Positions 2,262-12,631 of a DNA stretch of 12,631 nt are shown here, piece by piece. Below the pieces are notes generated by a model that searched no databases, was not told the DNA's origin, and saw only the letters and a list, made by a program, of their open reading frames with translations. The translations under genes and the position numbers were made by a program. Source of the stretch: Bugula neritina. Taxonomy: Eukaryota; Animalia; Bryozoa. The stretch spans positions 1 through 12,631 of the forward strand of contig CAXIUT010000163.1 of NCBI GenBank assembly GCA_964035545.1, written 5' to 3'. The first letter of the stretch is position 1. Every line of letters begins with the position of its first letter.

Positions 2262-4542
2262 ATGTAAGCGCCCAAACCACCATCCACTCCTGAACGTCCA
2301 GCCACGCCTACCGTCTTCTCGAAAAAGAACCTACAACGTCCCTTCGAAGTGATCTGCAGGATCAGACCACAAGAATAACCATAGTCTACGCCCGGTATGT
2401 CTCTTCAAATTCAGATATGGCTATCAATGAAAAGAAGTCAACTGTCACCATCATCTCAGATTCAAAAGGACTCAGCAAAGAGTTTGGGTTCCATAAAATA
2501 TACCCAGAAAATATCAAACAACAACAAGTCACCTCAGAAATCACACAACATATCATGGAAAACAGTCAAATCAACAGTATCTTTGAAACTATTCAGAAAA
2601 AGGCAGTCTGGTTATCAGCTATGGAGTGACTAACTCAGGAAAAACCTATACCGTCCTAGGCACTTAGGCCTAACTAGGACTACTACCTTCCCTTTTAAAA
2701 TAAATCATCAAAGAATTTCCCGATGAAACTATCAAAATAACAGCTTTGGAGATGTATAATGAAGATTTTTATTCACTGAAAGATAAAAACCAACTAAAAC
2801 CCAAATAATAATTTGGAATTTATATGTTCGACTAGATCAAACCTGAAGTAGTAACTCTTGACTGCCTTGATACTCTAATGAAGCAATACCAATAGAATAG
2901 AAGTCAAACTACTACTAAAGCAAATAAGAAAAGTTCTAGATCTCATGCTATTTTCAAGATAGTATGTAGCAGTTTATCTGTGGCAATAGTTGACTTAGCA
3001 GGTAGTTAGCGTTTGAACAAGGCCAATTCTAACCTACACTAGACTTTATCGATCAACAGCAGTCTACTTGTCCTTGGCAAATGTATGCACGCATTCAAAG
3101 ATCGCAGCATAATCCCTTATAGAGAATCAAAGTTGACTCGTATGCTGACTGAATACTTCACAGAATCATATAAGATATATATGATAGCACACATCAATCG
3201 ATCAGGGTAGATGTTCCACTAGAACATCAATGTACTAGAGTATGCTTCTTTGACTATGAATGTCCGATATGCCAATCCGATTAAAAACAGATCAATCATG
3301 AAAAGTATAAAGAAGATAGAGACGACTAAGAGTTGTGTGAAATTTAAAAAATAAAACAATTAGTAGTCTCCTGAAAGAGATGATAAAGTAGATGAGAATG
3401 AAGATAAGAAGATAAAGAAAAGTTAGAGAAAGAGCAAAAGAAAAAGTAAAAAATAATAAAAAGAATTGGCTGATAAAGCATTCAGATAGAGAAAGAGAAG
3501 AATGATGGATAGATATTTATAAAGACTATTTGGAAGAATGGATTAACATCATTTTCATTTAGATCAATAGTTTTAGATATTGGATAAGAAAGACCAAGCA
3601 TTTATTGAATAGATGAGAAAGATGTAGTATGTGAGTCCTAAGAAACAGTAAAAGGTGGAAATATCAATAAAAAAAGCATAAACTAGAATATAACTCAGAC
3701 AAGATATCTTAGAATAACTAGAAAGATAAAAAAGATAAAAACAAGTTGATGTTGCTACATAAACTTCCTTCAGAAATAACTAGTCGTAGTCATAGTCCTC
3801 AGGATAGTCATCGTAGGAATAAGAAGAGCAGAAAGGAAGTTTTTTGAAATCAGCAATGAAGCAAGTAGCTGGTCCTATCAGTAGTATAGTATTAAAAGTG
3901 ACTGATATGATTCGCAGTTGTTCCCAAAAGAAATAAAACAGATAAAATAAACATACTAATCTTATGATTAGAAATCATTTCGGAAGCTATCAAATTGGTC
4001 CTTAAGATAAATAGAACTAAACAGAAGATCTAGTTTATAGAGGCATTTTTGATAAAAAATAATAAAATAAAAATAATCTAGCAATGAGTCAACAATAATT
4101 TACATTTGCCTATGATTTCTACCAAAAATAAAAATAGATACAAGAATAAAGATAACTATATTTCAAACAAAAATAGTAATAATATCAAAGACAAGATTAA
4201 CTCATAAAAGAACTATAAATCAAAAAAGAAGAATAGTATAAAAGAAAAGAAGAAGAGCTAAAAAGAAGAGAAGATTAGTTAAAAAGAAAAGAATAGTCAA
4301 TAGATGGAGATTCAAACCATAGTTATGCCATCACTGAACAAACATTCACTTTTGCTCATAAAAACGATTAAGAACTACGATCTACAGACTAAAATACCTC
4401 AAGCAACTCAACTAATAACTTTCAATCAAAAATTACCAGACAGGATAAACCAGCTCAACCATTCGCCTTTGGGATGGCATCGTGGACGAGAAGTCCAGTT
4501 TTAACCCGTGCCCAAAAAAAGAAAAAGAAAACTATCATTTGA
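2262..4542 (+). CDS. N-terminal kinesin motor protein (kinesin-6-like motifs) with charged coiled-coil tail, ~746 aa; join(2262..2394,2415..2576,2597..4542)
   Basis: Motifs VICRIRP, P-loop YGVTNSGKTYT (GVTNSGKT at 2623-2646), LEMYNE, switch I NKKSSRSHAIF, switch II VDLAGS[TAG=E]R (2989-3012), [TAG=E]TLSINSSLLVLGKCM, IPYRESKLTRML and H[TAG=E]NINVLEYA. Ends at TGA4540-4542. Confidence 0.95.
2395..2414 (+). other. 20-nt spliceosomal intron
   Basis: gtatgtctcttcaaattcag; joins the RIRP exon to the next motor exon in frame. Confidence 0.9.
2577..2596 (+). other. 20-nt spliceosomal intron
   Basis: gtatctttgaaactattcag; removal puts the P-loop in frame. Confidence 0.92.
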
Positions 4543-4586
4543 TTTGTCTAAATAAATAAGATATTAGTTATCATTATAAGAGATAT

Positions 4587-5771
4587 ATGAGCATATTCTT
4601 TAACATTGGTCGCAGCACTACTCCTGACTACGTGTAACTGGACTCCTAGTTCATAACTGTCACTAACCTCAGAAATCTGATCAGTCGTAAAATCGGTGTA
4701 AAGGAGTAAGACATGAAAATAAAGAATGTAATAACTTTTGTCGAATACGCATCTAACTAATACATAAAGAAAGGATCGAGTGTTAGCGTAGATATATCTC
4801 ATAGAAATCTTATCGACGAACCTTTGAAATTCCATGAGATAATTAGTAACTAAAGGTTGTAAGCTATGATGGGAGATTGTCGATTCTATATGATAAAGAG
4901 TTCTAATGAGGACAACATTCAAAAAGCAAGAGACTGTTCTGTCTGGGCAACTACCTACCTCAACCAAGTAAACATAACAACTATCAAAGGATAAATTCAA
5001 AAATGCCTTTCAGTGCTACAAACACGTTTTCTTCTTTTTTGGGACCAATCGTTCCTTCTAACTGAAGGGATTGGCCAGAATGGAAGGAGAACCTGATAAA
5101 ATACCAGACAAATCGATTTGGTCAGGAGTAAGTAATATTCGCTTAGGAGGCAACTTTAAAATCAGATGGATCAGAAAAAAACCTCTCAGTCTCACCACCA
5201 TCGAAAAAAAATTAGGAGCTTAATCCAGAGATTAAATATCGAGAGCAACCGATGGCTACGAACCTGATAAATAAATATCCAAAAAAGTAGCCTTGCTATT
5301 CTAGTTGCCATTAGAACCCTACTATAAAATGTAAGACTTGTTTGATAGCAAAAAGGAAAAGTCAGGAATCAGCGGGACCATGATCAATAAACCAAGTGAC
5401 CTCTTTGCTTCTCAACTTGCATCTGTTATGCTCAAAAATGTATCAGAAAGTTCTCGTAATCTAAGATATATAAAGGCATTGACCAGCTAGGACTTACTGA
5501 TTAAATTCCACAGCCTATCATCATGAGACCTTTGCTTACTCTTAAACCTCAAAAAACAGAAAAAAGATCAAGTTCTGAGAGCAAGAGAAGACATAACAGC
5601 AAAAGACACAAGAAAGACAAGAAGCACAAGAAGAAACACAAGAAATCAAGCAAAAAGAGACGATACTCTTCTTCTGATTCTGATTCTTCAAGGAGTTCTC
5701 CTTCCCGAGACCGTCGCTCATACTCGAACAGTCGAGGATAGAGGTAAAAGCATAGAAGAAAGTAGAATTGA
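4587..5771 (+). CDS. DWNN(ubiquitin-like)-YTH domain protein with K/R/S-rich tail, ~380 aa; join(4587..4967,4990..5455,5476..5771)
   Basis: The N-terminus MSIFFNIGRSTTPDYVELDSEFITVTNLRNLISRKIGVKEEDMKIKNVITFVEYASNEYIKKGSSVSV follows the RBBP6/Mpe1 DWNN pattern. The YTH domain (about 4875-5301) reads RFYMIKSSNEDNIQKARDCSVWATT..LARM..SIWSG..RLGGNFKIRWI..DGYEPDKEISKKVALLF. The tail reads KRHKKDKKHKKKHKKSSKKRRYSSSDSDSSRSSPSRDRRSYS. The YTH call is strong, the DWNN call moderate to good. Confidence 0.9.
4968..4989 (+). other. 22-nt spliceosomal intron
   Basis: gtaaacataacaactatcaaag; removal restores YTH continuity (WATTYLNQ|DKFKNAF). Confidence 0.9.
5456..5475 (+). other. 20-nt spliceosomal intron
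   Basis: gtaatctaagatatataaag; brings the K/R/S tail in frame. If retained, the ORF stops at TGA5524-5526. Confidence 0.8.
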
Positions 5772-6027: not shown

Positions 6028-7422
6028 TCACCCAGTAAACTAATCCCGATCCGATATCATCTCTTCAGAAACCTCCTAAATCCTCCACAACAAATTTCTA
6101 ATATGACTATTCAGCATATTCTAAAACTTCACTCTCAAACTTTCATCGATATTGTACTTGTCCACCAACCGTCTCGACACCTCAAGAGCTGTCTCTCCCT
6201 AAAACACCATCAACTTCTCACTCAAACCTTCCCCCAAATTGACATCGATCGACAATATCGGCTTCCTGTCCATCGGCTCTTCCAGAATCTAACTCGATGG
6301 ACAAGAAGGATCGCTGCCTGACTCCTTCGTCTATGAAAATTAGCTATAACAAACAGTCTATTCACTTTTGTCTTTTTACTAGTAATTATTTCTACAGGTT
6401 GATTTCAGACGAACTGACCTTCTTACAGGATTGGCTACTTCCTGACAACTAGCCACCTTCTTCACAAAACTCATCTTCCCAGCACTACTACTATCTTCTT
6501 CGTCACTCTCAACTATCTTTATATTGCTGCTTCTCTTGCCTTTTTCCTGGACATAGTCGCCTTCACTCTGTCCGTATAAGATACGGTTGACTCTCAAAGT
6601 CAAATATTATTCATAGACAGCCAATTTGTTCAATTGAGAAGCCACTATTTTTAAATTGGAGTCAATCATTAATTTTTTACCACTATTCTCTTTGATTTGG
6701 TATCTATCCTGAGGATGGTAGTGATTGATATAGGTCAACATCTAGTATAGATTTTGACTAGGAACACCGCCATAAGTTTATCCTTCTAACTCCTGCCATA
6801 TCCTAATCAAATACTTCTAGTCCTCTATCTTCCTCAGATAATGCAGCTGTTTAAGCATACTAAATACTTCCTATAAACTCAAAAAACATTCACTTTCCCT
6901 CAAATGCGAATGGTTGCTATGATTCAATCTATCTGTTATCGACTTGAACTCCTAAAAGAACTGTTGGGACTATGACCGCTCGTGTGTCTGATTTATGATT
7001 GGTTTATCTGGTAGTTTGGTTGGTCTTTGTCTGACTGGGGAGTGATGATGATACTATCGAATGGGTACAGGATTAGAGTTCTTTCTATTATTTTGAAATA
7101 CTTTTTCTTTGCTAACTTATTCAGCTAGTTGTCTTTTTTAGTGACTAAAACTTCTCACAGGCCCACCCAATCTCTCCAAACTTCTGCTCTTGCTCTCCAA
7201 AGACCTATTCACCTTGTCTCCCACCTATCGCTTCTTCTTATCGTTTCTACTGCTATTCTGAGGAGTAAACGTTGGTCCTCTGATAGGCTATGACCCATGC
7301 TGACTGATATTGGTGGATGAATATGAAGATGGATTGATAGATTGGTTGGCACTTTTAGCTATTTGGTATAGTTGAGCGAACGTTTGTGGTTTAGGACGGA
7401 TGCGAGGCTGCTGTTTGGGCAT
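6028..7422 (-). CDS. Uncharacterised protein, ~464 aa, intronless; disordered N-terminus, degenerate EF-hand-like middle, small C-terminal domain
   Basis: 465 codons with no internal TGA, from ATG (MPKQQPRIRP) to TGA. The middle reads LSLEEVFSMLKQLHYL..LIRIWQELEGETYGGVPSQNLYEML. The C-terminal KPILSIDVNLGEGLSEKLMVFEGETALEVSRRLVDKYNI resembles a motif I recall from many ciliate hypothetical proteins. Confidence 0.85.
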
Positions 7423-7531
7423 TTTTTATTTTTAAGGTCGAGATATAAGTTTGTTGATTGGGAGAGTCAAACGTTTACGCATCAGTTAGTATTAATATTA
7501 ATTTAAGTTTAATTCTCATACTAAGTATAAT

Positions 7532-7562: not shown

Positions 7563-7643
7563 GGGGTTGGGGTTGGGGTTGGGGTTGGGGTTGGGGTTGG
7601 GGTTGGGGTTGGGGTTGGGGTTGGGGTTGGGGTTGGGGTTGGG
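7563..7643 (+). repeat. Internal telomeric tract (GGGGTT)13GGG
   Basis: Perfect 81-nt G4T2 array in right-end orientation, with no CCCCAA tract following it. Confidence 0.98.
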
Positions 7644-12528: not shown

Positions 12529-12631
12529 GGGGTTGGGGTTGGGGTTGGGGTTGGGGTTGGGGTTGGGGTTGGGGTTGGGGTTGGGGTTGGGGTTGGGTGG
12601 GGTTGGGGTTGGGGTTGGGGTTGGGGTTGGG
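12529..12631 (+). repeat. Right telomere, (GGGGTT)n with one variant GGGT unit
   Basis: 103-nt G4T2 array ending TTGGG, with an irregular unit at 12595-12598. Confidence 0.98.

Follow-up and report, generated by a model that had tools for sequence, protein, structure and literature searches.

Positions 1 to 12,631 of contig CAXIUT010000163.1, which is deposited under the bryozoan Bugula neritina, were analysed as one stretch of 12,631 nt (the window) and are ciliate macronuclear DNA. The window features a gene on the plus strand at 4587-5771, consisting of three exons, that encodes a protein of 380 amino acids (aa) in which an N-terminal DWNN domain is joined to a YTH domain. The N-terminal domain is a diverged DWNN, a ubiquitin-like domain that is otherwise located at the very start of human RBBP6 and yeast Mpe1, activators of the mRNA 3'-cleavage endonuclease CPSF73/Ysh1, and the YTH domain is of the YTHDC1 type. 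The fusion suggests that RNA methylation may be linked directly to cleavage at 3' ends. The gene adds a new member, short and diverged, to an unstudied family that databases list under automatic names, and the functional hypothesis discussed below appears to be unpublished.

The YTH and DWNN domains

The YTH domain (4878-5310, plus strand) is split by intron 1 and was assigned from collinear Pfam matches and from a comparison of a family profile with the PDB. Three stop-free pieces of the gene match successive parts of the Pfam YTH profile (PF04146, cut-off 22.1 bits): 4863-4967 aligns with profile positions 1-29 (24.7 bits), 4990-5058 with positions 32-52 (12.9 bits) and 5062-5220 with positions 57-101 (23.4 bits). 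A close orthologue, P0010, reaches 74.5 bits for the same family. The top solved relative of the family profile is YTHDC1, with an E-value of 5e-25 and 91 bits (YTHDC1 range 88-91), followed by TgCPSF4 (7ng2) with 81.5 bits and AtCPSF30 (5zuu) with 76.6 bits, and at lower scores by YTHDC2 (~70), MRB1/Pho92, YTHDF (50-58) and Mmi1 (37 bits).

Alignment to the family profile places the cage residues at Trp 4944-4946, Trp 5119-5121 and Leu 5143-5145, which correspond to W377, W428 and L439 of YTHDC1, and Asn 4914-4916 corresponds to N367. In 10 family sequences there is no variation at the second Trp, at the Leu or in the LGGNF.I.W columns that follow, and the WATT motif of the first Trp is retained in the compared family sequences. 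An earlier note on this DNA, made from the letters alone, had described a YTH domain of the DC type whose cage is intact at these positions, and this description is borne out by the Pfam pieces, the YTHDC1 profile match and the aligned residues. Because the DC-type cage is intact, the pocket is likely to bind N6-methyladenosine (m6A). YTHDC1 (YT521-B), a nuclear m6A reader, is thus the closest solved YTH protein, and both proteins feature a charged low-complexity tail, however, YTHDC1 has no ubiquitin-like domain, its N363 is replaced by Ser in the window protein, and the loop past the second Trp is shorter by three residues in the window protein.

The methylated base might also lie in DNA, in which case the pocket would read not RNA m6A but N6-methyladenine (6mA) in DNA that is single-stranded or being transcribed. 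In favor of this reading, YTHDC1 is able to bind 6mA on single strands of DNA, and 6mA is abundant at ApT sites of ciliate macronuclei. Heavy AMT1-dependent DNA 6mA is located near transcribed 5' regions in ciliates (PMC7145601, PMC12695648). Against this, the characterized YTH proteins are all known to act on RNA, and the RS-like tail and the DWNN domain of the window protein indicate RNA processing. Tetrahymena, which belongs to the same ciliate class, has orthologues of both METTL3 (AMT4) and METTL14 (AMT3), so this class does have an RNA m6A writer (PMC7145601). A DNA-reading pocket is given very little credence.

The DWNN-type domain spans residues 2-71 (4590-4799, plus strand) and was identified by Pfam, hhalign, AlphaFold2 (AF2), Foldseek and the ESM Atlas. 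The top Pfam family for the first 79 aa is DWNN (PF08783), and the alignment covers profile positions 3-70 of 74. With TAA and TAG read as Glu it scores 24.3 bits (E-value 3.9e-5), and with X in their place 22.2 bits; the gathering cut-off of the family is 26 bits. Deeper relatives of the window protein exceed this cut-off, with DWNN scores of 45.2 bits for L035, 34.7 bits for L006 and 28.0 bits for L010. A phmmer search of the window N-terminus against the PDB returned no DWNN match. The best PDB match of the L006 N-terminus is Mpe1 (6i1d_B), with the whole domain aligned, and the best single-stretch PDB match of the profile built from the window clade is the RBBP6 DWNN domain (2c7h).

Profile comparison with hhalign links the clade to the canonical domain through these deeper relatives. 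The clade matches a combined profile of L006, L010, Mpe1 and RBBP6 with P 1.4e-10 and a probability of 96.9% over 70 ungapped columns. Taken in steps, the clade matches L006/L010 at 2.4e-7 and L006/L010 match Mpe1/RBBP6 at 2.8e-7, whereas a direct comparison of the clade with Mpe1/RBBP6 gives only 4.3e-4, against 9e-3 for a reversed control. An AF2 model of the domain from an orthologue is a confident beta-grasp fold, with a predicted local distance difference test score (pLDDT) of 84.1. Foldseek searches with this model rank the Mpe1 ubiquitin-like domain (UBL; 6i1d_B) first and the RBBP6 DWNN (2c7h) second, and in a shape search of the ESM Atlas the nearest six family sets are all DWNN clusters and stand above ubiquitin. 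There is a discrepancy between these searches and the VIA-align Z scores, in which the DWNN model ties with ubiquitin and ISG15 and DWNN is not separated from ubiquitin. The call of a diverged DWNN domain thus draws on the relatives, the profile comparison and the fold searches. The DWNN identity proposed in the earlier note holds on these grounds, with the qualification that the window copy taken alone falls below the Pfam threshold.

Downstream of DWNN the only Pfam domain found is YTH. A pattern search of the 380 aa, which contain 3 Cys in total, found no CCHC zinc knuckle (C..C....H....C), no RING and no C..C pair, in agreement with the earlier note, which had reported the zinc knuckle and the RING as absent. 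The same note described a basic RS-like tail, and among the last 80 aa there are indeed 18 Lys, 14 Arg and 19 Ser. Similar tails are found in L001-L004, L006 and L010.

Reading frame, splicing and distribution of the fusion

TGA is the sole stop codon in the window, and TAA and TAG encode Glu, as in the peritrich nuclear code. This code covers window positions 2587-4539, a kinesin gene, and 4587-5771, and also loci L001 and L016-L033. In the upstream kinesin, TAG stands where switch II has its invariant Glu (DLAGS-E); TAG is also found within its E-x-L-x-x-L-x-Y/F-A motif. P0002, which is 89% identical, has ordinary Glu codons at 5/5 of the TAA/TAG sites in the C-terminal part of the window YTH. 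Across ten relatives, the window TAA columns offer 40 comparable cells, 30 with Glu and 2 with Gln, and the TAG column contains Glu in 7 of 7, which combines to Glu in 37 of 47 comparable cells versus Gln in 2. Ciliate code 6, in which TAA and TAG encode Gln, was the initial choice and was also the reading of the earlier note; it was dropped in favor of Glu on the strength of the kinesin DLAGS[TAG] site and the codons of the relatives, and the coordinates are unchanged by this correction.

The start codon ATG at 4587 and the TGA at 5769-5771 enclose a single reading frame after two tiny introns are removed. Exon 1 (4587-4967, plus strand) is one open frame when TGA is the only stop and contains the start codon, the entire DWNN domain, the linker and the first 30 YTH residues, so that this exon by itself encodes a complete DWNN and the first third of YTH. 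The N-terminal sequence MSIFFNIGR is kept in relatives, and what lies upstream of it consists of stops or unrelated sequence. Intron 1 (4968-4989, plus strand) is a 22-nt GTAAAC...AAAG intron in phase 0 after Asn-Gln. Its bounds are consistent with the Pfam YTH profile, which is collinear on both sides (positions 1-29 upstream and 32-52 downstream), and L001-L005 feature GT..AG introns of 20-23 nt at the same codon boundary. These short introns hold their position across species. The intron is missing from the P0010 lineage, L006, L010 and L035.

A 509-nt contig from the public run X4 is identical to window positions 4819-5349 minus exactly the 22 nt of intron 1, while the intron nucleotides are present in runs X2 and X3. 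The library type of X4 is not on record, and the contig looks like spliced mRNA or cDNA. None of the public runs that are recorded as RNA holds the gene. A second X4 contig (4569-4761) begins 18 nt upstream of the ATG and may reflect a very short 5' untranslated region, though contigs cannot prove a transcript end. That both domains are on one transcript, a point that the earlier note proposed to check by RNA-seq, gains support from exon 1, which reaches from one domain into the other, and from the contig spliced at intron 1, although no single X4 contig spans both domains.

Exon 2 (4990-5455, plus strand) contains the remaining YTH domain and a spacer. Intron 2 (5456-5475, plus strand) is a 20-nt GTAATCT...AAAG intron in phase 1 within an Arg codon and was picked from ten GT..AG candidates. 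The assignment was made by comparison with L001, which features a 21-nt GTAATCT...GTAG intron with the same start in the same Arg codon and both sequences splice to ...SRIDQLG...; spliced sequence covering intron 2 is found in none of the contigs of the runs. The same comparison ruled out a 26-nt candidate at 5440-5465. The L001 intron 2 is 21 nt long, which keeps the frame and makes the intron invisible in a plain translation. Exon 3 (5476-5771, plus strand) encodes the Lys/Arg/Ser-rich (RS-like) tail at approximately 5553-5768 and the stop codon TGA.

The relatives were found with a 53-aa piece of the YTH domain that was compared with 1.84 billion representatives and matched a handful of fragments. 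The search queries were stop-free pieces of the gene and five segments from the N-terminus, none longer than 81 residues, in which TAA/TAG was given as X or Glu; P0010 stood in for the whole protein. When the contigs of the matched fragments were read with TGA as the only stop, the same N-terminal domain was found upstream of YTH, and the architecture was recovered in L002, L003, L004, L006, L010 and L011-L015. The fusion is present in every related locus with enough upstream sequence. A metagenome scan, which was run with alignment A4 as the query since alignment A1 was too variable, returned 21 loci, and in 21 of 21 the YTH match is preceded at a distance of 214-260 nt by a DWNN-like domain. 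P0010 and its cluster encode DWNN and YTH in an uninterrupted open reading frame (ORF) of 216 aa on eight genomic contigs. The DWNN-YTH architecture described in the earlier note is therefore real, contained in one ORF and conserved.

These results bear on the concern that the gene is an artefact, that is, two separate genes, a chimeric assembly or a pseudogene. The X4 contigs, which cover 4569-4761 and 4819-5349 without joining the two domains, would be compatible with such an origin. However, there is no TGA between the domains and only ~25 codons separate them, the uninterrupted ORF of the P0010 cluster and the metagenome loci repeat the same arrangement, and purifying selection is evident. 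An artefact is effectively refuted.

The selection estimate comes from comparison with ten relatives, in which synonymous sites are saturated and nonsynonymous divergence (dN) is 0.10-0.34 for DWNN and 0.055-0.10 for YTH. Both domains are under purifying selection. The family spans a G+C content of 28%-62% and at least three lineages, which are the peritrich-like clade of the window, the L006/L035 clade and the GC-rich L010. The L010 sequence (936 nt, GC 62%) encodes DWNN and YTH in one frame of 311 codons, in which TAG occurs twice while TAA and TGA are absent, and is probably from another organism with a reassigned TAG, judging by this frame.

A search for homologous proteins with L010:125-853 returned only the query itself, and a profile search of the protein collection returned only mis-called fragments, none of which has both Pfam domains on record. 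One of the clusters, that of P0038, places a 56-aa YTH-like fragment in the same 90% cluster as the 405-aa tryptophan synthase beta subunit of Streptosporangium, which looks like a clustering or mis-assembly artefact. The ESM Atlas, when searched by shape with the DWNN model, yielded a 94-member cluster named 'DWNN/YT521-B-like domain-containing protein' (TM score 0.76), which is mostly from Ciliophora and is annotated with YTH in 100% and DWNN in 96%; a search of the same resource by sequence features found nothing but YTH-only or weak ubiquitin clusters. The cluster shares the same two Pfam domains in one protein with the window gene. Its representative is 627 aa in length compared with 380 aa, and the likeness is one of annotation and shape. 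In the literature no paper describing a DWNN-YTH fusion was found, and the texts that contain both words concern Yth1/CPSF30 or unrelated topics. The earlier note was unsure whether the architecture was new, and this doubt was warranted, as databases already contain it.

A possible tether to the cleavage machinery

On the most parsimonious reading, the window protein is proposed to be a nuclear m6A reader that is tethered by its DWNN domain to CPSF73 and the cleavage module, as an analogue of CPSF30/CPSF4-YTH that works through another subunit. This proposal is tentative, and its chance of being correct in full is judged to be somewhat short of even. The more general part of it, a nuclear role in RNA processing, is judged somewhat more likely than not. 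In the proposed mechanism, the YTHDC1-type pocket would bind methylated adenine, most likely m6A in nascent RNA, and the DWNN domain, which is the CPSF73/Ysh1-docking module of RBBP6/Mpe1, would anchor the reader to the machinery that cleaves 3' ends. Nuclear localization and contacts with SR-type proteins would come from the RS-like tail. In this way, m6A close to 3' ends would stimulate or adjust cleavage, polyadenylation and termination.

The closest parallel is found in plants and apicomplexans. CPSF30-L from Arabidopsis and CPSF4-YTH from Toxoplasma, other apicomplexans and chromerids link m6A to the choice of poly(A) site and suppress read-through (PMC9778586). The analogy to these proteins, which was drawn in the earlier note, is apt, in that YTHDC1 is followed in the ranking of solved relatives by their YTH domains (81.5 bits for TgCPSF4 and 76.6 bits for AtCPSF30), and in both cases a DC-type YTH is fused to a cleavage/polyadenylation module. 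The partner is different, however: CPSF30-L/CPSF4-YTH features three CCCH zinc fingers with the YTH domain C-terminal to them, while the window protein has no CCCH motif and its N-terminus is the ubiquitin-like domain. Additionally, the function of CPSF30-L/CPSF4-YTH is backed by experiment, whereas that of the window protein is predicted. The resemblance would thus be functional only.

If the analogy holds, it has some consequences for how 3' ends are specified in ciliates. Tetrahymena CPSF30 has been reported to have no YTH domain (PMC9778586), so that ciliates, which are sister alveolates of the apicomplexans, would lack the CPSF30-YTH fusion and feature DWNN-YTH instead. DWNN is the one domain that is known to grip the 3' endonuclease, and here it is joined to a similar DC-type YTH. 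If it still contacts CPSF73, the fusion would couple RNA methylation to the cutting step itself in a second way that arose independently, and this would bear on how read-through is avoided in gene-dense genomes. The hypothesis is testable in Tetrahymena or Paramecium if an orthologue is present.

The tether to CPSF73 is the weak link of this proposal, and a physical contact with CPSF73 in the window clade is considered doubtful. Mutagenesis of Mpe1 showed that joint mutation of F9, D45, R76 and P78 ejects the protein from the cleavage and polyadenylation factor (CPF) (PMC9380774). The window protein features Ile7, Glu40, Ile70 and His72 at these positions. Several observations weigh against a retained contact. 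Three of the four Ysh1-contact positions (F9, R76 and P78) are replaced in the window clade and only the acidic one is conservatively kept, the DWNN scores of the clade (24.3, 18.9 and 12.6 bits) are all below the Pfam cut-off, DWNN evolves two to three times faster than YTH, and the zinc knuckle, PSR and RING (RING/U-box) that accompany the UBL in Mpe1 and RBBP6 and are needed by Mpe1 are absent. In the window clade, either the surface of the partner has co-evolved or the DWNN domain has been repurposed.

Repurposing would make the protein a YTHDC1-like nuclear reader in which the DWNN-derived domain no longer contacts CPSF73 and serves a different partner, such as a protein of splicing or export or a ubiquitin receptor. 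The replaced contact positions, the fast evolution of a domain that scores below the Pfam threshold and the tie of its fold with ubiquitin and ISG15 are consistent with this possibility. Deeper members of the family point the other way. At the four contact positions L006 features Phe, Asp, Arg and Asn, the last of which is followed by Pro, and L035 features YKFKS and VERVNP; the motifs of the canonical DWNN domain are kept as YRF, YKF and FKF in L006, L035 and L010, respectively, and as ...ER.NP in L006 and L035, so that the contact residues are largely retained in the L006/L035 clade. Furthermore, a partner surface can co-evolve, and binding of Ysh1/CPSF73 is the only established role of the Mpe1/RBBP6 UBL (PMC6436931, PMC9380774). 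Repurposing is judged somewhat less likely than the proposal of a tethered reader. Within the family, the peritrich-like clade with its diverged contact residues offers a natural comparison.

A tether to CPSF73 may also act in different ways. RBBP6 isoform 3, which is the protein in PDB entry 2c7h, resembles the window protein in having DWNN without the zinc knuckle or RING and differs from it in having no RNA-binding domain. This isoform (DWNN only) reportedly inhibits 3' processing, as described by Di Giammartino et al. in 2014. By the same token, the window protein could be a competitor: lacking zinc knuckle and RING, it would sit on the RBBP6 site and prevent or slow cleavage at places where it has bound m6A. 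Mpe1 function requires the zinc knuckle, PSR and RING in addition to the UBL (PMC9380774), and because of this requirement a DWNN-only tether could recruit, modulate or compete. The absence of these parts here favors the competitor, however, competition depends on the same putative contact with CPSF73 and presupposes a canonical RBBP6/Mpe1 in the same organism, and it is considered improbable. Even more speculative is the idea that DWNN-YTH is the working RBBP6/Mpe1 of ciliates, in which the m6A pocket would replace the RNA-sensing zinc knuckle, PSR and RING and CPSF73 would cut only at methylated nascent RNA; this is a long shot, and if true, a poly(A) signal gated by methylation would fit genomes whose genes lie only tens of nucleotides apart.

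Source DNA and neighboring genes

The window features telomeric-type repeats at three places, C4A2 at 1-70 and G4T2 at 7567-7640 and 12533-12631. The arrangement resembles a minichromosome of ~7.6 kb with two telomeres, after which comes another piece with a telomere at its end. The ~7.6 kb unit contains the kinesin gene, DWNN-YTH and a minus-strand gene at 6031-7515. The stop codon of the kinesin is located at 4540-4542, and 44 nt separate it from the DWNN-YTH gene. In L011-L013, and also in L002, the gene order is kinesin, DWNN-YTH and STT3. The flanks of the P0010 cluster, viewed on five contigs, feature kinesin on one side, and STT3 on the other in the three that reach far enough. In the window the kinesin neighbor is retained, and downstream there is a different, convergent gene followed by the telomere.

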